A stretch of DNA of 63,456 nucleotides, counting the filler, from Guillardia theta CCMP2712 (taxonomy: Eukaryota > Protista > Cryptophyta), in assembly GCF_000315625.1 (NCBI RefSeq). It is 7 parts of 7 records of this genome, joined end to end, with 100 filler letters (N's around TTAATTAATTAA, not from the genome) between each part and the next. Parts side by side here need not be neighbours in the genome. Positions count along the whole stretch, not along the records: positions 24,541 to 52,617 come from NW_005434607.1; 6 more parts are not named here. One strand, given 5' to 3'. The position numbers and the translations under genes are program-made. Positions 33,848 through 48,522 of this stretch are shown here, in pieces. The notes beneath the pieces were generated by a model. The model was not told the origin of the DNA and did no database searches. It saw nothing but the letters and a program-made list of their open reading frames with translations. Positions within the stretch are counted from its first letter, which is position 1. The number at the start of each line of letters is the position of its first letter.

Positions 33848-33900
33848 GGTCCTTCAATGATGTCCGTGCATAAGCTTTGTGGACAGCATGTCATCCGACC
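33848..33900 (-). promoter_or_regulatory. SECIS element of the membrane selenoprotein gene
   Basis: On the minus strand: ggtc-gg-AUGA-C-AUGCUGUCC-ac-AAA-gcuuaugc-ac-GGACAUCAU-U-GA-A-g-gacc. It has the kink-turn core, a 9-position helix with one mismatch and apical AAA, 47 nt after the stop. Confidence 0.88.
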
Positions 33901-33946
33901 TCGGCTCTTGAAACTCTCCGCGCACCCTTCACTTCACCTTCTGCAT

Positions 33947-34870
33947 TCATATCCCGTCGTCCGCCCTGATCGCCTTCCACTCCTCGCGTATCTTCCGCAG
34001 TTTGCCAACAAGGTCCGCATTCCAGAATGTTGCAAAGAAGAACAGCGCAAACCCGGCATACGTCATGCTCAAGAAGACCAACCCGACAGTAGAAAGACAG
34101 GACATAGATTCCATCCCCGTGCTACACGTGTGGTCAAAGCTGCCCTCGCCGATGTAGCACGTGAAACATGAACTCCCCTCGCCGACCGCGTACGACCCTC
34201 CCCCGCAGTCAAACGAGCCACAGTCAGTGCTGGCGTTGCATGACCGAGGAGGCGACATTGCGATCCTCACAGCGCAGTTGGGAACGTACTGGCTCGAACC
34301 AGGCCATGGCCCCGCAGGCCACACGTTCGTGTCTTGCAGAACATGGCGCATGTTGTCACCCAGGATCAGGATAGCCGCCAGGAGCGTGAGGTAGGCAGGG
34401 CCAAAGCGCATGCAGTGACCAGGGATATGTCTTCTGCCATTGACAGCGTTCCTGAGGACGAAGACGAAGGAGAAGGAGAAAACTAGAAAATTAACACCCA
34501 GGGATAGGAAGTGCCCTAGCTGCCTAGACGCGCTGGTGACGGTGCCTCCTAGGAGGGGGATCACCAGCGCAGGCCAGCATCATGCACCCACAAGTGCAGG
34601 GATGGATAGAAGGAGGGTGAGGAAGGAAATGATCAACCCCTTCCTCCCTCCCTCCACCTGCCCCTTCACTTCTCCCACCTCCACATCCACCCTTACTTGC
34701 CCTTCCTCAGCAGCTCTCGCAGAGGAGAGGAGAGGCTCTTCCTCATCCTGTTGCTGCTCATGAATGGTGGGAGAGGAGGTGGATGGAGAGGAGGTGGAGG
34801 GGCCTCAGCTCGTGCATCCGCCTCCCTTCCTTGCGCTCTTCGGCACAAACCTGCATGAATCGCCGGCCAT
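33947..34870 (-). CDS. Membrane selenoprotein (MSP-like), 307 aa, with two in-frame UGA/Sec (codons 22 and 97)
   Basis: ATG 34870: MAGDSCRFVPKSARKGGGCTS-U(34805-34807)-GPS...LLLSIPALVGA-U(34580-34582)-CWPALVIP. It continues in frame into the multi-TM ORF ending at 33947. A SECIS lies downstream. Confidence 0.85.
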
Positions 34871-35170
34871 GCCGAATTGGGACAAGGTGGGTTAGGATGG
34901 AATTTAGGGGGTAGAGGTACTTCAAGTACCGGTACATGGACCATTTTTTCAGTATTGAAACAAGGGGTATGAGCAATGATAGCACGGGTGGTCATAACTG
35001 CGGTAGCTTGTTGTAGTTTTGGGCATGGCTGGAAGGCTGCTAGATAGACAGGGGTAGGGTAGAAAGACAACGGGTTCCAATGATGGATCATAGAAGGGGT
35101 ACAATACGCAATTCTACCTACTGAATTCAAGGGGTAGATGGATGGTGGTGGGTTGGGGGGTGGGGGGTTG

Positions 35171-35438
35171 TTGTTTGTGCTAGAAACGGGAGGGGCAACA
35201 ATATGAAACGTCGCATTATGGACTCCACGAAAATGCGGGGGATGAGGGTAATGTGAACGAGGGGGATGAGGTTTTACCCTCATACCGCACGCAAGGGACG
35301 AGTTTTAGCGATTTGAAACAGGATTTGAAAGGTCCCCTCCAAACCCACCAAGCTTCACACTGGGTGGCCCACATCCCCCCGCATTTGGAAAAAGAGAACG
35401 ATTCGTATTGTTGCCCCTCTCATTCCTAGCACAAACAA
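35171..35438. repeat. Imperfect ~41-nt inverted repeat pair (MITE-like) inside a GGGTAGGGT-rich non-coding region
   Basis: ttgtttgtgctagaaacgggaggggcaacaatatgaaacgt (35171-35211) versus acgattcgtattgttgcccctctcattcctagcacaaacaa (35398-35438). Confidence 0.7.
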
Positions 35439-36453
35439 TCTACCCCCGTCCAGAGGACCCCTCCTTTTTGACCCCACCCCCTAAATATCATGTTGGATTA
35501 CTATATGCTCCCTGCTGAAACACCGTTGTTCAGAGGAGACCTGTCCACCTCCACCCTACCCTAATAGACACAGCACCCTACTTTTATCGTATAGGAAATG
35601 GGTACCGTTACTACCCTACCTCATCCTGTCTAATAGAGACATGATGGGGTCTTTTTACCTCTTATCCAAGCTGAATTAGTGGGTAGGGTGATCAATTCAT
35701 GTAATCCAGGGGTAGGTAGTCATGGAGTGCCTTTTGCATGTTATAAAGATGTCTAACAGGGGTGGTCTTGAAATTGTGTTTGTGGGGGTAGGGTATCACT
35801 GAACGGGTGAAATAAAGTTGAAGGTCATCCAGGCCAGTCATTACGTGGGGTAATATGATGATTCATTGTGGGTGTATGTGCACTTGAATGGAATGATGGG
35901 GGTAGGGTAGATAAGTGGCATCATGAAATATGGGTAGGGTAATTCTGGATCATGCTTGTGTGTGGTGGGGGTAGTCAAGGGGGGTAGGGTAGTCTTCTCT
36001 GGGCGAACATGGAAGGAAATGAACTCAAGGAAAGCACGAGTACCAGGAATGACATGAGCAGAAGGACGGTAGGAGAGACAGTACAGGTGATGCAGGCGAT
36101 TCAAGGGATGCAGGCGCTACATGAGTTGCAGGTGGTGCAGGAGTTGTTAGGAGGAGTGGAAGGGGCAAGATGTGTAGCAAGGCGAAGAGGATATGGGTGA
36201 GGAGGGAGCATGGGCAAGGGCAGTTAATCATTTGGTCAAACTCGGAAGCTCGAGGATAGATGGGTACGTGGGGAAAAGTTTGTATACAGTGTAAGTGTGA
36301 AAAGCTGAATTATTCAGGATATCTCAAATACATGTACGGCGGCAATTATATTTAGAGCAGAGCATCGCGAGTATAGCGATTTGCTTCCAGAGTAGCAAGT
36401 CAAGGGTCCATGCTAGTCGTAAGATGTCTTAACTTGTAACTTGTAGGGATATC

Positions 36454-38624
36454 ATGCTCGCTATAGCGCTGAGAGGCTCCAAAACTCTTGGGAGCAAGCT
36501 CACCTCGTCTATCGTCGTTCGGAGGTGCGCAGCTACAGCTCCCAAGGAGGGCAGGCGATGGTTGCAAATCTCCACCACGAACTCCAACATGGACTTCAGC
36601 ATCGCAGGGCAGGCGAAGGAAGGGAGGTCGGCATTCCTTGATAACCAGAGCACAACAGCAATGGATCCTCGCGTGCTTGACGCCATGATGCCTTTGCTGA
36701 CCTGGCAGTACGGCAACCCCCACAGCAGGTCGCATCACTACGGGTGGGAAGCAGAGGAGCTAGTGGAAGAGGCTCGCGGGCATGTTGCGAAGTTGATCGG
36801 AGCCGACGCCAAGGAGATCGTGTTCACGAGTGGAGCGACCGAGTGCAACAACATGGCAGTGAAGGGAGTGGCTCGGTTCTACGGAGCCAAGAAGAAGCAC
36901 ATCATCACGACTCAGACTGAGCACAAGTGCGTGCTCGACTCCTGCCGCGTGCTCCAGAACGAGGGCTTCGAGATCACCTACCTGCCGGTGCAGGCCAACG
37001 GCCTGATCAACCTGGACACGCTGCGAGCTGCGATCAGACCGGATACGGCGCTGGTGTCAGTCATGGCGGTGAACAACGAGATTGGAGTGATCCAGCCCAT
37101 GGTGGAGATCGGGAAGATCTGCCGGGAGAACAAGGTGTTCTTCCATTCGGACATCGCACAGGCAGCAGGCAAGATTGACGTCAACGTCAACGAGTGGAAT
37201 CTGGACCTCGCGTCCATCTCCGGTCACAAGATTTATGGACCCAAGGGCGTCGGAGCGCTGTACATCCGCCGCCGTCCTCGCGTGAGGTGGGACGTTGCTG
37301 CAAGTTGTCAGTCTGGAGATGAGTGGGAGTGAAGGTGTAAGGGTGTGAAGAAATTATGGGACAAGAAAGCGAGGAGGCAGGATAGATAGAGACGAGAGGA
37401 GAAAGGAAAGCATGAGGGAGAGGGAAGCATGAGGGAGAGCTATTTCAGAATCAAATTGAGTACCCACCCGTTAATGGTAGCGGAGCTTTTACAGCAGATA
37501 CTAGAGGTGCAACTGAGAGATTTCTTTTGATGCCTTTGTCAACTTGTCTCAGAACTTTGCCCTTGACCCCTTGTGCAGGATTGAGCCGATCATCAGCGGA
37601 GGTGGACAAGAGCGCGGGCTCAGGAGCGGCACTGTGCCTGCTCCTCTTGCTGTTGGCTTGGGTGCGGCCGCCAGGATCGCGCTGGAGGAGAGGGAAAGGG
37701 ACTACGCTCATGCTAAGCGGCTTTCAGAAAAGATGTATGCTCCTAGCTCCCCGAATTCCCTTCCTCTTGCTGCTAGCAGAACCCCTCGTTGCGCATGCTT
37801 CTTGACTCTTGGCTCCTCCAACCCGTTTCTGCTCTTGTCTCATGAGTTCTGGAAGGTACAAGGCCGTCATGCAGCGAGTGCCCCATGTCACCCTGAACGG
37901 TGATCCTGAGTCGCGCTATCCTGGTAGGAAGAGGAGGAAGAGCAACGGAGGACCTGGCCAGGTGCTCACAGTCCCCACAGGAAACCTCAACCTCTCCTTC
38001 GCCTATGTGGAGGGCGAGAGCCTCCTCATGGCCCTCAAGGTGCGCTCCTCTCCTCTCCGGACCTGTCAGTCTCACTGGGGAGCAGGAAGTCGCCGTCTCC
38101 TCCGGCTCCGCCTGCACCTCCGCCTCCCTCGAGCCCTCCTACGTCAGCCTTCCGAGCGAGCGCGACACGTTCCTGACAGTGTTTGCAGGTCCTGCGAGCG
38201 CTCGGGGTGGACGAGGACATGGCACACACGTCCATCAGGTTCGGTATCGGTCGCTTCACCACCGAGGAGGAGATCGACTACGCTGTCAACCTGGTGGAGA
38301 AGCACGTGCATAGGCTGAGAGAGATGTCGCCTCTGTGGGAGATGGTGCAGGTCGGCCCACCGTTGTGTTTCCCTCCTCTTTCGCCTCCTTCCCCTTGCCT
38401 TCTCTCTTTACCTCTCTCCTGCTGTCTTCTTGTCCTGTGTCCTCCTCTTTGCCTTCTGTCTTCTTCTCCTCCCTCCTCCTCTCCTTGCCCTCCCTGACAA
38501 TCTGCACTGCTCTTGTCCTTTCCGCTCGAACATGGACCTCTTCCTCCATGTGATTCTGTTCCGGTGCTGATTGGAAGCGCAGGAGGGGATCGATATCAAG
38601 AAGATCGAGTGGGTAGCGCACTAG
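36454..38624 (+). CDS. NFS1: Mitochondrial cysteine desulfurase, multi-exon
   Basis: [12 protein letters not shown]; GNPHSRSH; [10 protein letters not shown]; [12 protein letters not shown] (PLP Lys); [12 protein letters not shown]; [16 protein letters not shown]; ends [11 protein letters not shown]. Arg/Ser-rich presequence. Confidence 0.97.
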
Positions 38625-38868
38625 AGGGGACAGAGCTGAAGGAAGAAGGAAGAGGCGGTGGTGGAAGCAGTGGGTTGTGCAGGAGGAGGACGAGGATGAT
38701 GTTTTTCAGGACGGCCTTGTAAGAGAAAGAATGATCGTTTGCCTTGTCCGTCCCTCCATCTCCTTTCACAATCACACGGCTACATCAACGTAGAAGCATT
38801 TACAAGACATCTAGGAGCTTAAGAGTTGTTCCTCCACACCCCAACAAAGAGGTTCCCAGCTAAACTCT

Positions 38869-40108
38869 TCATCGCTTGAGAGGACCGACGCTCTCCACGT
38901 TCTTGATCACTTTCTCTGCCTGCTCAACTTCGTCATCCTCTCCATCCTCCTCCTCCTCCTCCTCCTCACCTTAGCCTTGATGCTGTCCCAGTTGCCGCTG
39001 GAGATGTCCTGCGGGTCGAAGAGAGGGGCGACGAGTCCGACGGAGGCAGCTCCCTTCTGAAGGAACTCGTGCGCGTTGTTCAAGTCAACTCCCGACTGCC
39101 AGGCAGCGTCAGGGGCAGACCGCAGAGGATGAGCCGAAGTATGAGAAGGGTAGAGGGAAGGAGGAGACGGCAGGGAGGAGGGGAGAGGGCGGGGGGAAGG
39201 GAGGGAGTCTCACGGTGGGGTTGATCTTGAGCATGGGAAGGGCGGCAGAAACTGCCTTGACAAAGTCGGGTCCACCGGCGACTCCAGGGAACAACTTCTG
39301 GATGGGGGCTCCGGCCTGATGAAGATTCAAACATCTATCCTCTGCCCCCCTCTCTCCTCCTCTCCCCTCCTCTTGCAACTTCACACACCTTGTAGGCCTG
39401 GTAGAGCTCAGTCGGGGTGCAGCATCCTGGGATGCAAACCACGTTGCGGGTGCGGCACCAGGTGACAACCTGCAGTGTCTGGCGGTCAACGGAGAAGAAG
39501 GGGGCGACAGGGGCAGCGGGGACCTCAGGGACGAGGACGGGAGCGACGATGAACTCAGCTCCAGCATCGAGCGCGTTCTGGGCATCCTCGATGTCCATGA
39601 TGGTACCGCAGCCGATCATGACCTTGCCGTCGTACTTCTTGCGGAAGTCGGCGACGGCGTCGAGGCACTTGGGGGTGGTAAGGGTGAACTCGACGATCTT
39701 GAAGCCTCCGTCAATGGCTGCCTGCATGGCCTTGGGAGCCGCTTCCGCCGTCGGGGTACGGAGCACAGCGCATGCACGGTGCTGCGGCAGCGAGTGAACA
39801 TCACGTAGGCGAAGAGAGGAGTTCATCATCGATCTTCCTCTGCGTCCCCATCCCCTTCCTCTACCTCCCTCCCACATCATAACAGCAAAACGTGCGAGAT
39901 CCAGTGGTTCCAAGCATCATCATCAAAGACCTCTAACAACTCTCACCTGCGCAAAACGGTCCAAGACGCTCTCGAAGGTCTTGGGGGTCATACCCCATCG
40001 GCTCTGGTCGGCCGCACGCTCGCCGTACGAGCGAACCTGGGGAGCCGAGGCCTTAACGGCCAAGGAACGGACGGCATTGAGAGCAGAGGAGCGTCGCAGA
40101 GCAATCAT
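38869..40108 (-). CDS. KDPG/KHG (Eda-family) class I aldolase with mitochondrial-type presequence, 6 exons
   Basis: CAVLR...GGFKIVEFTLTTP...IGCGT...AGAEFIVAP...IPGCCTPTE..AGAPIQKLFP...INPT/SGV. N-terminus MIALRRSSALNAVRSLAVKASAPQVRSY. Confidence 0.92.
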
Positions 40109-41528
40109 GTCGAGGTTGGGACTGCAGCAAGGGGACGTCAGCTTGTCATGCCGCCAAGAAACACCATCCTCCACATGGAGAACGCAAACTCCCTTGCCTC
40201 CCTCGTTCGCTACATGCTCTCTGAGCGTTTGTCCTCTCTGTCCTTGCCCTCAACGCCCCTTGTTTCCTTAGCCCACTCCTACCTTGTAACTCCTCCGTTG
40301 TGGTTTCCATCTTACCAGGGCATGTCAGCCCTTCTCTTCTACCATCTTCTTCTCTTTCTCCTCCTCTCATTGTAGTTCACTTCTCCTACCCCCATCCCTC
40401 CCCCTCTCATCTTCTTCTCGCTCCTCTTCTCCATCGTCCCCCATCCTGTCCTTTCCCCTCACGCATAAAGGATCCGTGTAAATCGTGCGAACCAAAACCC
40501 AAATAATTTCCAAAGTAACCATCACTTATTCAATTTTAGGAGGATATTTTTACAGTATTCGTCCCCAAACCGCCGTCAGAAAAATAAAACGGGATATCTA
40601 AAAAGTTAGATATTACTTTAAATAAATTTAAGTTTAAAACAAATCAGTACCAGTGGACAGCTTTGAAAACATTTTTCCCTGCGGACTGCACAGTGATGCA
40701 AGCAAAGTCAATAAACATTTTATCATGATATACAATATTATAAATCCTTTTACACAACCACTTTACAGCTCTGGCCCCTCCCCCTCAGGGGCATGAGAGC
40801 AAAGGCAGAACCCTCCAGGGATCATTGACTATGAGCGCATATAGTCCACTCCCTCCCTCTACCTTTTGACCGTTTCCGGTTCGCCTAGCCTAAGAGACAT
40901 ATTGAGGCGGACTCGTTGGCCATTCCACTCGTGATATTTAAAAACATTTGTATGATATCATTTTAAAATGCTTCATTTGTAGGCAAAAGCAAACTCATTT
41001 CAATACAGAAACATATTACTTTTATCCGAAGCATGGTATCAATTCTGTACCATTTCATTTGTTAAAAGTATTTTTGCTAGTCAGTTATAAAGGGGGGGCC
41101 GCCACGTCCAACCGAGGACAGCATGCTCTCTTTTGCCCGGTGAGATTCTCAGAAGGAGGGAGGAAGGAGGGAGTGAGGGCAGTAACGGAGGGTGAGAAGA
41201 AGGGACAGAGAAGTCGAGGAGCAGGAGAAGGATAAAGAGGAGGATTGGGAAGTGCAGTAAGCGAGTAAGACTGAAATCCGAGAACATTTCCAACGCCTCT
41301 TGTTTGATTGATTCCTACTCATGCGCACTTTTTGGCGATGGTGGTGGCTGCTGATACCTGTTGAATTGAGAGTGTATACCAAAAATCTTTGAGCTTGATG
41401 TTATATTACAATCCGAGAATCACTGGGACTTCGCTCACCTGACTATCTCGATCACTCGTGTGCTTGCGATCATGTGGTGGATAGAGTGATCATGATGCGG
41501 CAGTCTTTTTCTGACAAGTTGGACTAGA

Positions 41529-42622
41529 TCTGCTAGCCGCGCTATCGCTGGCCAGGCCTGCCGCCAAGTCGCCCGCTCGAGCTCTGCTCAGGCAGTGAAG
41601 GCTTTCCCCTCCTTTGCCACCAAGCGCTTCGCCACTGGTCCTGCTGCGTCCCCCACCACCGTCAGCGATGAGCTCTTGGAGAAGCTCTCCAAGCTCTCCA
41701 CCCAGGTGAATCAGCGAGACGAGCAACAGGCAGGGCTGATGCGCTCGCAGGGCCTCATCGATGGTCTGTGGGTCATGGGCTGGCCGTCCAGCTACATCGA
41801 GGGAGCAAGGTAATTCACCCTCTTCGTCGGATCCTGCTCCTCACAGCGTCGTCACAGACCTCTCGCCAAGGGCATGAAGTGTGCGGGAAGAGCTGTCACT
41901 GTCCGCTTCGTCCCCCAGCGCCCTGACATCGGCACCGACAAGCCCGGCGGCGAGAACTCCCCCGAGTACGAGGCCTTCGAGAAGTGCGACAACAAGACTG
42001 TAAGCCCGCACAAGACTTCCCCCGTCTCGTGCCCTTGACACCACATGCAGGTCCTCGTCATGTCCTCCGTTGGCCCGTGGGAGTCCGTTGGAGGAGACAT
42101 CAAGTTCCTCCGCCTCAAGCAGCGCAACGTGAGCTCTCGTGCATAGACTTGGCTCTGCTCTGACCGCTACTGACAGGTCGGAGGCCTCGTGACCGACGGA
42201 TCTGTCCGTGACACTGATACCATGATCGGTATATGAGGCCTCGAAGATTTGCTACAGCTTGTTGACATACTCTCCTTGCAGGCTATGGCATCCCCACCTT
42301 CTCCTTCTCCACCACCGCCAAGCAGGGGCCTGCTGCCATGCAGCCCTGGGAGTGCAACGGTGTCATCAACTGTGGTGGTGTCGTTGTTCGCCCCGGCGAC
42401 GTTATCGTCGGTGATCAGGACGGAGTCGTCGTCGTCCCTGCCGCTGCCGCTCAGCAGGTCTACGACATTGCCCACAGCCGCGAGCAGATCGAGGAGGTTG
42501 TGAAGGCTCAGCTCGAGATCGAGAAGTGCCCTCCCGGCAAGTACTACCCTTTCATGAGCGGAAAGATCAAGCCCGACTCCCCCCTCGGCAAGCTCCTCAC
42601 CAGCAAGGGCATCAAGTTCTAA
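41529..42622 (+). CDS. RraA-like / HMG-CHA class II aldolase family protein with mitochondrial-type presequence, multi-exon (start codon uncertain)
   Basis: AGRAVTVRFVP; GGDI; GGLVTDGSVRD; CGGVVVRPGDVIVGDQDGVVVVP. N-terminal SASRAIAGQACRQVARSSS...ATKRFAT. Confidence 0.9.
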
Positions 42623-43252
42623 ACCGCTCTCTATCTTGTAGAAAAGTAACCCTGTAGATGGATTATTCTTGATTTCGCTGAAACTAGTTTTGGAGTATAT
42701 GTAGTTTCGTATATTCACACTGAAGGCGCTCAATTTCACTTTTGGACCATACGCTCAGTCAGGAGGAGAATGGCGGGCTCCTCCGAAACTTGACTTACTC
42801 CCGGCGTCACGGACGGTGACGGCTCGGCCGTGGCGGGCGCCGGGAAGGCTCCAGTGAGACCGTCAGACGGTGTCACTGATATGCGTGACTGGGTCACCGG
42901 TGATGAGGGCCGTCACATCCGATGGTAATGGACCGTACTCGATGATACTGAGGGCGGCCGGTGAATGGACTCTCAGTCTGGCGGCCCGGCCGGCCCGGCC
43001 GGCGCCGCTGACGTCACCAACGGCTCATAACCTATCGGAGGCAGATATTTCTTTTACAGCTCAAAAAAGACCAAATTTCTACACGTGCATAAAAGCCGAA
43101 AGTGAGTTGTTTCGCATTTTCAGCTTGAATCGAATCAAATCCGAGTCAAGGAGGTGATACCAAGGTTTGAATCGACTTTTACACAAGTTCAAATCGGTTC
43201 AAACCGTAACATATAAAGAGGTGAGGAGAGGACGTGGGGAGGAACTGCGAAG

Positions 43253-45119
43253 ATGCTGTCCATGCTCAGAGTGTCGCCTGCGCAAGCGCTGATCAAGAGG
43301 GCGAACTTCGCGTCCTGGTCGCAGAGAGGACTTGCCAGCGTCCCATCGACCATGAAGGCAAGACGTCCTGCTCCTCCTTGGCCTCTCTTGCGGAGCTTGC
43401 CGCTGATGGTTGTTCCTCCAGGCGATGGTGGTGAGCCAAGTGGGACCTGCTGATGCTCTCAAGCTGGACAGCAAGCATCCTGTTCCCGCCATCAGCGATG
43501 GTCAGGTCTTGGTCAAGAATGAGTTCGCTGGTATCAACTTCATCGACACCTATCATCGAAGTGGTCTGTATAAGCGTGATCTCCCCTTCATCTGCGGACA
43601 GGTATAAAAGACATTTAGCGCACCAGTCGTGAGCAAAGCATTCATTGTTCTTGCAGGAAGGAGGAGGGTACATTGCTCAGACTACACCTAAGGTAATCCT
43701 TTGCCCTTGTGAAGCTTCTTGGTAACCCGATGGTTCTGGTCAGGCTGAGGCCCAAGGCTTCAAGGTCGGAGACAAGGTTGTCTATTCAATCCTCCAGACC
43801 TACTGCGAGTACTCCGCCGTGCCGTCTGCCAAGCTCCAGCCGGTTCCTGACAACGTCGGCCTCGATGTTGCCACTTCCTGCGTTGTGCAGGTCGGCTCTT
43901 TGGCCATGTTTGTCTGCGTTTCCTTGTCCTTTGGGGGGATGTGTTTCACGTTTTCACGCGTGCTGAGACTGGTCACAGGGAATGACTGCTCACTACTTGG
44001 TCAGCGATGCTCATGCTCAGGTGATGCCGTATCTTGGGGCATACGGCCTGGGCCTCACATCTGCTGGCAGCTGATCAAGCCCGGCGAGTGGTGCCTTATC
44101 CATGGCGTCGGCGGTGGCACCTGCCAGTGGGCGGCTCAGGTTTGCGATTGGGACGGGAAGGATGGAGGGAGAGAAATTGAGTGTTTCACGATCAGATGGC
44201 AAAGTTGAGGGGCTACAAGGTTATCGGCACCACCTCCAAGAGCAAGGAGGTGACCCGTCCCATCTCCGCTCCCTCCCCATCCTTCGCTGACTCGATGCTT
44301 CAGGCCGTCGGCCGCTCCACGGGTTGCGATGAGCTCATCGTGCTCGACGAGGTTCCCGGAACCAGCTACGAGGACTACACGAGGTTTCTTCAGCCCTTCC
44401 TCCCGATCTTGTCGCACGTTCCTTTCCCGCGCAGTATCTTCTTTGTTTGCTTCACTTCCCCGCCTTGAACATTTTGTTGTCTTCACGAACTCTTCTGATT
44501 TTCTCCCGCGCAGCGTCGACGTCGTCAAGCGTGTTCTCGAGATCACCAACGGGGTCGGTGTCAAGTGCGTTGTTGACGGCATCGGCAAGAACACTGTCGA
44601 CATTTCCATCGACTCCCTGGCCAGGTGAGAGGAGAGAGGCTGTGTTCTTGCCCATGAGCTGCCTCCCCTTGCCCTCCTCGCTGTCCTCCATGCTTCCTCT
44701 TCATCCTCAGGTAGTTTGACTAGCTCCTCGTAGACGCGGCATCTTTGTCTCCTTCGGAAACGCCTCTGGAGCCGTGCCTGCCTTCCCTGTCCTCCGCCTC
44801 ATCAACAAGTCGGCCTACGTGACCAGGTCACTTAGAGGATGCGGGAGTGTGTGCAGGTGATGGAAACGTTCAGGCCGAAGCTCCTCGACTACACCACGGA
44901 CAGGCAGGAGATGCTTTACCGATCCAACGAGATTTTCAAGTGGTTGGGAGATGGCAAGCTCAAGGTCTCCGTCGACAAGGTCTACGCCCTCGACAAGGTC
45001 CTTCAAGACTCTTGCGCAAGTCTGCAGGATGCTGATGCTTCTTCTTTCGGCAGGCTGCTGAGGCCCACGAGTACCTCGAGGCTGGCAAAAGCACGGGCAA
45101 GGTTTTGTTGAAGATCTAG
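43253..45119 (+). CDS. NADPH:quinone oxidoreductase (Qor/Zta1-like MDR) with mitochondrial-type presequence, ~12 exons, first intron GC-AG (43358-43421)
   Basis: AGINFIDTYHRSGLY; QGMTAHYL; LIHGVGGG; VVDGIGK; VSFGNASG; AAEAHEYLEAGKSTGKVLL. TATA-like catataaag at ~43210. Confidence 0.93.
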
Positions 45120-45388
45120 GTGTATGGTAGGCGTATTGGAGGCTTTCAATGAAAGACAAGGAGTTAGAGAGAATGCAGGAGCAAGCAAGAGGCCGGAGGG
45201 GGGTGGGGAAAGGCTTTAAAACATCGCAACAAGTCATGTCCGATATGTTTGCACAGGCATCCAGCGAGCCGAGACATGTTGGTAGACTTCTCCTCCCGCC
45301 GCCATCCCAGCCATCGTCTCCTCCTCCTCCTCCTCCTCCTCCTCCTACTCCTCTCTGCATCTCCACCTGGACCCTATCGCCTTGTTCC

Positions 45389-46476
45389 CTAGTGCTCGAT
45401 GACGAGGATCACCTTCCCCGTCGTCCCCATCTTGTGCTCGATCACCTCTACGTGACTCTCCGCCGCCTCCGACAGGGGAAACTTCACCCCAGCCACGGGC
45501 TTGATCGAGCCCTTTTCCAGCCTCTCCTGGATGCCGTCAAAGACAGACTGAAGCTCTTCCGGGGAACCCAGGCCCAGCAGCCCGACGATGTTCCCTTCCG
45601 TCGTCATGAGGGAGCGCGGGTTGATCTCCACACTTCCCCTGCTCCCGATGATCACCACCGTCCCGTTCTTCTTCAGCAGCTTCAGGTCCTTGTCGAGGTT
45701 TGCATGTGCCGCCATCTCCAAGATGACGTCGGCTCCCTTCTTCTCCGGCGTCATCGCCAGGACCTCCTCCATGTACCCCTCCTGGTTGTGCAGCACAGCG
45801 TACGCCCCTTGGGAGCGGATCAGCTCGAGTCCAGCTGGCGTCCCGGCTGTCCCAACGACGGTGCACCCATGGCTGATGGCAAGCTGTATCGCAGCTATCC
45901 CGACGCCTCCTGACGCGCCATGCACGAAGACCACGGAGCCTGGCTTGGTAGCGACCCTTGTGAACAAGGCTCTGTACGCCGTCCTGTACACAACCCCGAT
46001 GCCCGCGCCCTGCTCGAAGGACACTGCCTCCGGGAGCAGATGGACGTCGGTGAGGTTCGCAGTGCAGTACTGGGCGTACGTTCCTGTCACGCTCCCGCTG
46101 AGCCAGACTCTGTCCCCCTCACGAAACTGGGTCACCCCCTCCCCGACTGCATGAATGATTCCAGCGCCGTCCGTCCCTGGTGTGTAAGGGAGCTGAGGAA
46201 GCTGAGCATAGACTCCTGCTCTCTTGTACGTGTCCACCGCTGTAGAGCAAGAGCATCATGTCAGCCCGTCATCAAGTACACAGCGCAACAACTCTTCATT
46301 CCTCCCCTAGCTACCTCTCCCTCCCTCCCTCCCCTTCTCCCTGCTCTCCACTCACGGTTGATGCCGGCGGCGAAGAGCTTGACGCAGACCTGGCTCTTGC
46401 CGGGGGAGGGGATGGGAAGCTCTGCGATCTTCAGCTCCTCGGGGCCTCCAAACGACTGAACGCTCACTGCCTGCAT
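45389..46476 (-). CDS. Zeta-crystallin-like NADPH:quinone reductase, 2 exons
   Basis: FGGPEEL...AAGINPVDTYKRAG...PYTPGTDGAG...YRTAYRAL...VHGASGGVGIAAIQLA...IGSRG..INPR..TTGKVIL. Confidence 0.93.
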
Positions 46477-46696
46477 GGTGAGGACAAGGGGGAGGGGGTG
46501 GGGGTCATTTTGTTCAGTAAAGTAGCCTAGAAGGAGGGGTGGTGGCAGAGGTCATGAGTCATATAAAGGCGTGCCGTCGGGGAGTCGAGTAAGGGAGAGG
46601 AGGAGAGGAGAGCGTGAGTGGAAGGTACAGAAGAGGACGAGAAGGAGCCACAAGCTTTCCTGATCCTTTAGCTCCTCTCACATCTCAATCGGAGGA

Positions 46697-47560
46697 ATGC
46701 TCAAGGGTCTGCTTCGACCAGCCCAGGCCATCGTTCCTCGGACCTCAAGAATGCTCAGCTCGCAAACTCCACGTCCCACCAAGAGGATCACGATCGAGCT
46801 CGTCAGCGATACCATGTGACCCAACGGGTACATTGGAAAGCGCCACCTCTGGAACGCCATGAAGGAGGTACATTCGCATCCAATGTCGCCAGGGGATCCG
46901 CTGGGGTTCACCCTCATCCGGGTCCCCTTCTTCCTCGAGCCGGACTATCCGCGCGACGAGGAGTTCGGGGAGACGAACAGGGAGAGGCTGGTCCGCAAGT
47001 GGGGAGGGATCAGGGGTTGGGAGAGGCAGAAGCAGCAGCACAAGCTCAAGGAGCGCGGGCAGGAGGTGGGCATTGCGCACTTCAATCTGGACAGGATCGC
47101 CTCCAGCACCTTCAGGAGCCACCGGCTGGTGCAGTGGGTGACGAAGACGCGCGGTATCGTCGCGGCAGAGACGCTGTACGATCTGCTCAACTACCGGCAC
47201 TTCGAGGTAGGAGAGAAGCTCAACAGTACCCAGCTGCTCACGGACGCGGCGAGCAGAATCGGCATCGACAGGAAGGAGGTGGAGGACTTCTTGAGCTCGG
47301 AGGAGGGAACGAGAGAGATTCAGGAGGCGCAGCTTGCCCTGCGGAGGCTGAACATCAACAGCATCCCAACCTTCATGATCGGGGGAGAGTACATGTTCAG
47401 CGGGGCCCTCCACCACAAGGAGATGGTGCAGGTGTTCAGGGAGATCGAGAATGAGGGAGGAGCACCGGGCTCTTGCTTCGCTAAGATCCTTGGGATCGGC
47501 GAGGACGTGCTCGAGCAAACGATCGACCTTGACAAGCCGCCAAGATGGGAACAGGCATGA
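46697..47560 (+). CDS. DsbA/FrnE-family thioredoxin-fold selenoprotein, 287 aa, Sec at codon 41
   Basis: ATG 46697 MLKGLLRPAQAIVPRTSRML...ITIELVSDTM-U(46817-46819)-PNGYIGKRHL aligns with FrnE D..SD..CPWCYIGKRRL. It is in frame with the downstream PFFLEP...INSIPTF..SGA ORF. A SECIS follows. Confidence 0.9.
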
Positions 47561-47578
47561 TGGCATGGCACGGAGGAA

Positions 47579-47645
47579 CCTTTCGGATGACAGTTTGCTC
47601 GCAAAGCTCTCCATTCTCATGCACGAGCAAGCTCGAAGGTGAAGG
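47579..47645 (+). promoter_or_regulatory. SECIS element of the DsbA/FrnE selenoprotein gene
   Basis: ccuuu-cgg-AUGA(47587-90)-C-AGUUUGCUCG-c-AAA-gc...gca-CGAGCAAGCU-C-GA(47635-36)-A-ggu-gaagg: 10-bp helix, apical AAA and a lower helix. Confidence 0.9.
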
Positions 47646-47758
47646 ACTCTCGTGGGATGTGCATCTTTGCTTGAACCCGCAACAAGAATAAAACCCCCAA
47701 GGGAACCGCAGTCCCCCTGCCCTGCCATGAGCAGCAGCATACTCTGCCCCCTCCCCTC

Positions 47759-47983
47759 TCACTTCTTCTCCTCCTTCACGGGCTCGTTGACGTTGAGATG
47801 CGTATGCCCAGCGGGCAAGGGAAACCCGTCCACGGCCTCGGCGAACCTGACCACAACCTTGTCCGGGGAGATGTCGGCGCTCTTCACTGACGTCACTGCC
47901 TTGATGATAGCATCCGCCACCTCCTTCCTGACAGCAGCGTTCCTGCAAGCCTTGGGCAACCAGTTGACCATGATGAAAGGCAT
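47759..47983 (-). CDS. 4-oxalocrotonate tautomerase-superfamily protein (Pro-1), 74 aa
   Basis: M-PFIMVNWLPKACRNAAVRKEVADAIIKAV....ISPDKVVVRFAE: beta-alpha-beta size and N-terminal Pro. Confidence 0.75.
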   Translation of the reverse strand: MPFIMVNWLPKACRNAAVRKEVADAIIKAVTSVKSADISPDKVVVRFAEAVDGFPLPAGHTHLNVNEPVKEEKK

Positions 47984-48522
47984 CTTCTTAGCAGTTCTGC
48001 GGGGACAGTCAACGACAGTGTTTGCAGGCCTCTCTCCCTCTTGTCCTGGAGATCTTAACCGCCCTGATGCTCCTCGACTGAGCTTATATGCATGTTCTGC
48101 TCTGTCCTGCCTGACCCACACTCCTTCATCCTTGGTACCCACAGCCTGACGTATGCGGCTCTATCTTCCATTTACTCCTTGCCACTGTCTCATATCTTTC
48201 TCTGCTGACCTCCCCTCCCAGCTTCTTCCTTTCTCCTCCTCGCCTGAATTCTCCCCTCCCTCCTCTTCTGCTGATTTCTCCCTTCTTCCTCCTCTCCCTC
48301 TCTCTTCCTCTCTTCCTCTCTCCTTCCTCTCTCCTTCCTCTCTCCTTCCTCTCTCCTTCCTCTCTCCTTCCTCCCTCCTTCCTCTCCCCAACCCTCTCCC
48401 CTCTCTCCCCAACCCTCTCCCCTCCCTCCCCCTCCCCTCCATTCCCCCTTATATCTCTCGCTCAAAAACTTGGTACGGATATCCCACACTGCCGGTCGTA
48501 CCGGGACGTTGAAAGTACCTCT

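Follow-up and report, generated by a model that had tools for sequence, protein, structure and literature searches.

Do eight enzyme and redox genes that lie side by side in the nuclear genome of the cryptophyte Guillardia theta make up a metabolic pathway, or is their proximity fortuitous? The genes occupy positions 33848-47983 of a window of 63,456 nucleotides from G. theta CCMP2712 (the window is the whole stretch of DNA that was analysed, and all positions refer to it unless a contig is named), in a block that contains no N. Two of them encode selenoproteins, with in-frame codons for selenocysteine (Sec), and a first-pass annotation had read the block as an operon-like catabolic pathway of eight genes. 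All eight genes are real and their families had been correctly named (Pfam, NCBIfam). We consider it likely, however, that they form a gene-dense chance neighborhood of separately transcribed genes and not a pathway cluster.

The DNA is eukaryotic nuclear in type, with short GT-AG introns, and no tRNA genes were found in the piece. The piece belongs to scaffold JH993031.1 of G. theta CCMP2712 (GCA_000315625.1), whose annotated genes map one-to-one onto the window; the ranges of NFS1 and Eda are those of the annotation. The eight genes are, in order:

33947-34870, minus strand: membrane selenoprotein of the MSP family; single exon of about 307 codons, ATG at 34870, stop TGA at 33947-33949.
36454-38624, plus strand: NFS1, a predicted mitochondrial IscS-type cysteine desulfurase; introns present, 458 amino acids as annotated.
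38869-40108, minus strand: Eda-type aldolase of the 2-keto-3-deoxy-6-phosphogluconate/2-keto-4-hydroxyglutarate (KDPG/KHG) type; introns present, 259 amino acids as annotated; PF01081 and TIGR01182 (eda).
41739-42622, plus strand: RraA-like protein with the class II aldolase/oxaloacetate decarboxylase fold; four introns; PF03737; poly(A) at about 42713.
43253-45119, plus strand: QOR1, an NAD(P)H quinone/enone reductase of the medium-chain dehydrogenase/reductase (MDR) type; 368 amino acids, 11 introns, presequence of about 33 amino acids.
45389-46476, minus strand: QOR2, an MDR NADPH:quinone reductase of the PIG3/zeta-crystallin type; 323 amino acids, one intron at 46240-46355.
46697-47560, plus strand: DsbA/FrnE-like selenoprotein with an N-terminal presequence; PF01323, with FrnE structures as the best PDB match.
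47759-47983, minus strand: Pro-1 protein of the tautomerase superfamily, like 4-oxalocrotonate tautomerase (4-OT); 74 amino acids, single exon, no presequence.

The strands therefore read - + - + + - + -, and the successive intergenic gaps measure 1583, 244, 1630, 630, 269, 220 and 198 bp. Both flanks of the block are non-enzymatic, one coding for Armadillo repeats and the other for a large protein of CHB_HEX/laminin-G/EGF type. For the family calls, individual exons or open reading frames (ORFs) were searched against Pfam and NCBIfam, and each multi-exon gene is accordingly assigned from separate exons; joined exons (QOR1, QOR2, RraA and Eda) were used for checks of reading frame and for one local comparison of QOR1 with QOR2. 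Transcript evidence was drawn from three transcriptome assemblies and one 3'-end RNA run. Contigs or intron joints bear out the last five genes, from the RraA-like gene to the tautomerase, and poly(A) tails are seen at about 42713 (RraA) and about 45173 (QOR1) in the 3'-end run and one assembly.

The claim of an operon-like catabolic pathway does not survive inspection of the block. The genes lie on both strands and they assemble as separate spliced transcript contigs. Their predicted compartments are mixed. NFS1, QOR1 and the DsbA-like protein (read from ATG 46697) begin with Arg/Ser/Ala-rich N-termini that contain no acidic residue, and the first 30 residues of Eda include a single acidic one; no presequence is seen in QOR2 or the tautomerase. 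Five presequences had been proposed in all, and these four stand, whereas that of the RraA-like protein begins at a GTG with no in-frame ATG. The N-termini suggest about five mitochondrial proteins, two cytosolic (QOR2 and the tautomerase) and one in a membrane (MSP).

Nor is the gene order kept on the contigs that were compared, with the sole exception of the tautomerase and DsbA genes in four contigs, L015-L018, to which we return below. The comparison covered the MSP-NFS1 pair and the flanks of DsbA and of the tautomerase; the Eda-RraA, NFS1-Eda and QOR1-QOR2 pairs were left out of it. A relative's metagenome contig (L002) carries an MSP homolog, and the 3 kb upstream of it contain no NFS1. 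DsbA orthologs were found on contigs of up to 15 kb (L005-L009 and L012, from about four organisms), which carry none of the other seven families. Among the tautomerase flanks examined (L014, L019-L021 and L023-L027), seven loci, from Seminavis, Fistulifera, Pelagophyceae sp. CCMP2097 and four metagenome organisms, have no DsbA, QOR, RraA or aldolase gene.

What might still be said for a single cluster? It would comprise all eight genes as an operon-like catabolic or detoxification unit, with NFS1 serving as selenocysteine lyase for both selenoproteins. The enzyme and redox genes are consecutive, with non-enzymatic genes at both ends, and include two divergent genes of pyruvate-forming aldolase type. 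Bacterial lig/gal/nah operons and plant and fungal gene clusters likewise set non-homologous enzyme genes side by side, and RraA-fold aldolases, DsbA-fold proteins and tautomerases are families that do occur in the lig/gal/nah lower pathways. Compared with these bacterial, plant and fungal examples, however, the block lacks a common strand or transcript, a ring-cleavage dioxygenase, a LigJ/GalB hydratase, a LigU/GalD isomerase, a transporter and a regulator; its products have three predicted compartments, and its order is not conserved where it was compared.

The RraA-like gene offers a point of contact with the bacterial systems. Its last exon (112 amino acids, the only exon searched) gives weak matches to LigK-type (HMG/CHA aldolase) models, with 46.6 bits for TIGR02798 (cutoff 304.5) and about 47 bits for NF006731, but it lies closer to an uncharacterized subfamily, PRK08245, which is the best NCBIfam match at 74.5 bits. 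No lig or gal genes lie near the RraA-like gene, and a tblastn search of plasmids with this exon found no match. There is no sign of an origin from a bacterial operon, either in that search or in a scan of prokaryotes made with the tautomerase alignment only.

As to NFS1, some members of the IscS family have Sec-lyase activity, and the proposal that it serves the two selenoproteins would draw on this. Nothing links it to them, however. Aminotran_5 matches at 1.4e-69 and TIGR02006 (IscS) scores 371 bits on exon 1, so that NFS1 is assigned as a canonical IscS-type desulfurase (an IscS equivalog), and it is missing beside the L002 MSP homolog. Contig depth gives a further point. The QOR1:QOR2 ratio is 3.4, 39 and 6.7 in the three assemblies, differing more than tenfold between runs, and contig depth is a poor measure of expression. 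Taking these points together we regard a cluster of all eight genes as highly improbable.

The analysis demonstrates the identities of the genes, their Sec codons, their splicing and the lack of a conserved order; compartments and enzyme activities are predictions, and on these a chance neighborhood would be composed as follows. NFS1 would supply persulfide sulfur for iron-sulfur clusters. Eda and the RraA-like protein would be two unconnected pyruvate-forming lyases, and the two MDR reductases would be distant paralogs, QOR1 mitochondrial and QOR2 cytosolic. MSP is a membrane protein of a known family with two Sec residues, and the DsbA/FrnE-like protein would be a presequence-bearing enzyme with a single selenol, decoded by means of a selenocysteine insertion sequence (SECIS) in its 3' untranslated region (UTR). 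The adjacency of all eight would then be due to chance, the only possibly meaningful pair being the DsbA-Sec gene and the 4-OT-like tautomerase. By reasoning rather than computation, a genome of about 25,000 genes might be expected to contain about one, or a few, runs of eight enzyme-type genes, or of eight genes of which five have presequences; very many windows were inspected by the scan, which bears on the chance of such a run.

Several observations weigh against this interpretation. The five mitochondrial-type N-termini among eight are somewhat above naive expectation. Three divergent or convergent pairs are tight and could share regulation, namely QOR2 and DsbA, with starts 220 bp apart, DsbA and the tautomerase, with ends 198 bp apart, and the divergent Eda and RraA. 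The QOR2:DsbA ratio of contig depth is 1.2, 2.0 and 1.0 in three runs. The comparison of gene order was made mostly on short metagenome contigs and not on assembled cryptophyte genomes. Finally, four independent picoeukaryote contigs from metagenomes (L015-L018) have a tautomerase ORF immediately before the DsbA-Sec gene on the same strand.

The last point requires a closer look at the two proteins concerned. The DsbA/FrnE-like gene contains two elements of a selenoprotein:

46817-46819, plus strand: Sec codon (TGA), within SDTM-U-PNGYIGKR.
47587-47636, plus strand: SECIS-like hairpin in the 3' UTR, with AUGA, a 10-bp helix, an AAA loop and GA.

The reading frame runs upstream through the TGA to ATG 46697 (MLKGLLRPAQAIVPRTSR...ITIELVSDTM-U-PNGYIGKRH), while the reference annotation starts the gene only at ATG 46859, past the Sec codon. 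The TGA is conserved in ten of ten metagenome orthologs and also in L015, and all ten have an N-terminal extension rich in S, T, A and R before it. The earlier assignment as a selenoprotein is upheld by this conservation in every ortholog examined and by the hairpin in the 3' UTR. Database homologs look different at the N-terminus. In all 14 that were inspected the sequence starts with the Met that follows the Sec codon or no more than a few residues from it, no Cys form was seen among them, and 112 of the best 120 homologs are 200-239 amino acids long, as truncation at the TGA predicts. Public protein sets appear to truncate the family systematically.

The sequence SDTM-U-PNGYIGKR aligns with SD..CPWCYIGKR, which we take to be the motif of FrnE-type proteins. 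Sec replaces the first Cys of CPWC, and every ortholog seen has Gly in place of the second (U-P-N-G). The CxxC dithiol required by DsbA/FrnE oxidoreductases is thus absent from all of these orthologs, and a dithiol DsbA/FrnE cycle is unlikely because the second Cys is Gly. Judged by its sequences the family seems to use Sec exclusively, as a lone selenol with no resolving Cys.

The SECIS candidate is the top match of a pattern-and-pairing scan, with 10 of 11 positions paired, and its helix is present in the minimum-energy fold. Transcript contigs span 46579-47644 and so cover both the TGA and the hairpin, and SECIS-like elements also follow the DsbA orthologs of L011 and L015-L017. The scan is not specific taken alone, giving 5 matches in the piece against 2.5 in shuffles, and Rfam (4227 models, E up to 5) returned no SECIS match for the DsbA element or for that of MSP.

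A 'DsbA' selenoprotein family is established in algae, and 14 selenoproteins in 12 families are reported for G. theta (Jiang et al. 2020, PMC7539508). The protein described here shares with the algal DsbA selenoprotein and with FrnE (PDB 5CNW) the DSBA domain, Sec at the first Cys of CPWC and a 3'-UTR SECIS; it differs in that the resolving Cys is Gly and that all orthologs have the N-terminal, targeting-type extension.

Two features of the transcripts around this gene may be recorded. The QOR2 and DsbA-Sec contigs start within about 100 bp of each other on opposite strands (46476-46579), and the region between the two genes is likely to be a bidirectional promoter. At one metagenome locus of a DsbA homolog (P0213) a putative 91-amino acid ORF lies upstream and divergent in a geometry like that of QOR2 exon 1. 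At the other end, transcriptome contigs covering 46954-47998 take in both the SECIS-bearing 3' end of DsbA and the tautomerase gene convergent with it, so that the two mRNAs, as assembled, may overlap in antisense at their 3' ends.

The partner gene encodes the 74-amino acid protein. Its ORF (47762-47983, minus strand) is an exact match to the annotated gene on JH993031.1, and an exhaustive search of 1.84 billion proteins yielded 111 representatives of the family. Members are 58-84% identical and come from cryptophytes, diatoms, pelagophytes, bolidophytes and picoeukaryotes. Pro2, Arg14 and Arg46 are nearly invariant and correspond to Pro1, Arg11 and Arg39 of 4-OT, with an N-terminal MP in 32 of 34 aligned members; W8, K11 and, in most members, C13 are invariants specific to the family. 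The AlphaFold2 model (pLDDT, the predicted local distance difference test score, of 85) is a beta-alpha-beta unit, with strands at 3-6 and 44-47 and a helix at 16-31. All of the top 50 PDB matches found by Foldseek belong to the tautomerase superfamily (4-OT, CaaD, DmpI, YwhB, YdcE and MIF), with probabilities of up to 0.96 and E-values of 0.13 or weaker, given so tiny a protein. A profile search matched the MSAD structure 3mjz at E 0.024.

Curated models do not recognize the family. The Pfam tautomerase models PF01361, PF14552 and PF14832 give no match at E<=1 for 33 of 34 members, the remaining one matching CHMI at E 0.12, and no NCBIfam tautomerase model matches the 74-amino acid protein. 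The family motif is not present in the genomes of 185,579 prokaryote species, bar one marginal match of 15 residues. The protein resembles the 4-OT family (4-OT, YwhB, PptA/YdcE, DmpI and CaaD) in its length of about 60-75 amino acids, a Pro after the Met, the beta-alpha-beta fold and two Arg; it differs in its own W8/K11/C13 set, in the lack of a significant curated model and in the failure to find its motif in prokaryotes. From alignment and model together we assign it to a separate, eukaryotic-algal family of 4-OT type, with predicted tautomerase activity. Just upstream of the gene there is a CT-rich, low-complexity tract at 48250-48440, with repeats of the type TCTCCTTCC.

How then are the two genes related? 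Their arrangement in G. theta is convergent, with 198 bp between them, and that in the picoeukaryote is tandem:

Contig L015, 4961-6158 (also in L016, L017 and L018): candidate bicistronic locus, with a 73-amino acid tautomerase ORF followed by the DsbA-Sec ORF.

These contigs have 48% GC, are intron-poor, and carry photosystem II and other housekeeping genes. The stop codon of ORF1 and the start of ORF2 are joined as TAA-N-ATG. ORF1, of 222 nt, has no ATG in any frame where 3.2 would be expected (P ~0.03 by shuffling), and homologs elsewhere have 1-7. The DsbA ortholog of L015 is 55% identical to that of G. theta and keeps the TGA; other orthologs are 52-61% identical. A SECIS-like hairpin beginning 53 nt past its stop codon is of the GUGA type, with a G before the UGA quartet. 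SECIS elements of this type are reported for Ostreococcus, and because of this the organism is probably a prasinophyte green alga of Mamiellales type.

Bicistronic loci of green algae are characterized by a short ORF1, almost no spacer and a depletion of ATG (PMC11291117). L015-L018 share the short ORF1, the scant spacer and the lack of any ATG before the start of ORF2, and the tautomerase and DsbA genes look bicistronic there. The likeness is limited to L015-L018, where a single transcript may be predicted; the G. theta pair is convergent, and each of its genes must therefore be monocistronic.

The DsbA-Sec protein and the 4-OT-like tautomerase alone might thus constitute a functional, co-regulated unit that is kept adjacent in some lineages. 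Such a unit could, for example, combine a selenol-dependent isomerase or reductase with a keto-enol tautomerase acting on the same enone- or quinone-type electrophile, and QOR2 may have joined them in one lineage only, as in G. theta it has a promoter region of about 100-220 bp in common with DsbA. The two genes are neighbors in both G. theta and the picoeukaryote, with the hallmarks of green-algal bicistronic loci in the latter. The chance that two given genes are adjacent is about 2/N per genome, which on a rough estimate gives P ~0.01 when about 15 loci are allowed for. Both families are eukaryotic-algal and strongly conserved. Diatom tautomerases moreover bear the name 'DSBA-like thioredoxin domain'.

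Against a unit of this kind, the two genes are separate in at least 10 other lineages, and their orientation is unlike in the two lineages where they are adjacent. Their compartments also seem to differ, since every DsbA ortholog has a presequence and the tautomerase, which needs a free Pro-1, has none. A search for fusions of the two proteins gave none in 111 tautomerase representatives and 120 DsbA matches. We therefore hold a real functional link between the two genes, including the example just given, to be possible but to have clearly the smaller share of the probability. The fuller proposal, in which the Pro-1 protein and the Sec-only DsbA-fold enzyme form a coupled unit, with bicistronic genes in a Mamiellales-like picoeukaryote and neighboring ones in a cryptophyte, we put forward as unlikely.

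The name given to the diatom homologs deserves a comment of its own. These sequences are so named in public collections though they contain no such domain, and the Seminavis locus has no DsbA gene within 10 kb of the tautomerase. The name may go back to a reference genome in which gene models had been merged.

Adjacency could also reflect shared history without present function, either an ancestral linkage that has been kept by chance or a single DNA segment that passed, with both genes, between the cryptophyte lineage and a green alga. The cryptophyte and picoeukaryote tautomerases share a C-terminal P(A/P)GHTH(E/L)NV that diatom and pelagophyte sequences do not have. The DsbA proteins do not follow suit, because that of the picoeukaryote (55%) is no closer to G. 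theta than are the others (52-61%). The differing orientation also speaks against shared history, and the lack of any ATG in ORF1 suggests that in the picoeukaryote translation is under constraint today. An explanation by history is in our judgment improbable. The neighborhood as a whole we continue to read as one of chance.

The second selenoprotein lies at the other end of the block and has the following elements:

34805-34807, minus strand: first Sec codon of MSP, in the motif C-T-S-U-G-P (CxxU).
34580-34582, minus strand: second Sec codon, in ...IPALVGA-U-CWPALVIPLLGG, that is, IPALVGA-U-CWPALV; this is the Sec of the UCWP signature of the family.
33854-33894, minus strand: SECIS-like hairpin in the 3' UTR, with AUGA, a 9-bp helix, an AAA loop and GA.

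The frame that ends at 33947 is open upstream through both TGA codons to ATG 34870. On the 5-kb contig L002, where MSP is 57% identical, TGA is found at both places with conserved flanking residues, the motifs being C-R-E-U-G-P at the first and PAL(V/I)GA-U-CWPALVIPLLGG at the second. The nearest homolog is that of Hanusia phi (78%), and MSP homologs in the protein collection are truncated ORFs. The published MSP alignment (Ostreococcus, Chlamydomonas, Volvox and Dictyostelium) contains PALVG(S/A)-U-CWP, RHVLQD, CLS.VGW, TY.GF and WNAD..GK (PMC2375036). Matched to it by eye, the frame 33947-34579 has RHVLQD, CLS.VG, TY.GF and WNAD..GK together with the hydrophobic segments. The earlier call of a membrane protein with two Sec residues is confirmed by the two in-frame TGA codons, both kept in L002, and on its motifs the protein is classed as a member of the MSP family. 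The SECIS-like element, found by the same pattern-and-pairing scan (2.5 matches per shuffled piece), begins 53 nt past the stop and resembles both the DsbA element and one downstream of the L002 MSP gene.

MSP is known to have two Sec residues, the second, N-terminal one being found in Dictyostelium (Lobanov et al. 2007, PMC2375036). The G. theta protein agrees with known MSPs in the UCWP signature at a membrane helix, the four downstream motifs, the two Sec residues and a candidate 3'-UTR SECIS. Its N-terminal Sec lies near a Cys as in Dictyostelium, but in a CxxU arrangement where Dictyostelium has CxxxxU. The cryptophyte protein also has an additional Cys-rich insert of about 50-60 amino acids between the conserved 'Y.xxC' and 'CLS' motifs (CNAS.DCGSFDCGGG...CF.CY..., 34090-34290, minus strand), which is missing from shorter metagenome homologs and from the published green-algal and Dictyostelium MSPs. 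Both the MSP and the DsbA selenoprotein families are thus already described in algae (PMC2375036, PMC7539508).

Two alternative readings of the MSP gene were considered and rejected. The TGA at 33947-33949 could be read as a further Sec (...ADDGI-U-MQKVK-stop), but homologs end there or diverge and the SECIS-like hairpin begins 53 nt downstream, so that the codon after ...ADDGI is best taken as the genuine stop. A spliced first exon was rejected because in L002 there is one continuous frame with both TGA codons. Within the coding sequence, between the two Sec codons, there is an inverted repeat of GA-rich and CT-rich segments (34596-34667, minus strand) that ends about 17 nt before the second UGA. 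Rfam gave only sub-threshold, miRNA-like matches for this hairpin, which is probably a by-product of sequence composition.

The remaining genes can be dealt with more briefly. The Eda-type and RraA-like genes are divergent, minus then plus, as had been said. The internal exon structure of Eda was ambiguous in exon modeling, while that of RraA gave a single unique solution, with two of its introns confirmed by transcriptome assemblies; PDB matches of the RraA exon are 5x15 and 3noj. The start of the RraA-like gene is odd. A conserved N-terminal region (...VSDELLEKLSKLSTQV...; 41492-41739) precedes the annotated ATG 41739 and is read in a frame that has no ATG, from which the ATGATG at 41492-41497 is shifted by one base. 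An error of annotation or assembly, an unusual start codon or an unseen intron could each account for this, and the real 5' end of the gene is probably further upstream than annotated.

The two reductases are indeed different. QOR1 and QOR2 are only 32% identical over 179 residues, and because of this we class them as old paralogs and not a recent tandem copy. For QOR1 all intron joints are found in the three transcriptome assemblies, and ADH_N and ADH_zinc_N_2 match on its exons. Its first intron (43358-43421) is GC-AG in place of GT-AG, and is supported by contigs of all three assemblies. QOR2 matches TIGR02824 with 148 bits, and its intron is confirmed by the transcriptome assemblies.

A catabolic cluster with a Sec enzyme in a protist would be striking if true. 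The evidence favors an ordinary neighborhood, and the pathway claim should not be kept. What the locus does bring to light concerns its selenoproteins and the tautomerase. The reference annotation of G. theta cuts the DsbA-like selenoprotein at its Sec codon, and the inspected N-termini and the lengths of database orthologs fit the same truncation; the apparent single selenol of this protein is a clue to its mechanism. The recurrent adjacency of the tautomerase and DsbA-Sec genes provides a functional hypothesis for two uncharacterized proteins that are widely conserved in phytoplankton. If it were true, the coupled unit would be an undescribed selenium-dependent isomerase/tautomerase (or partner-protein) system of marine phytoplankton.

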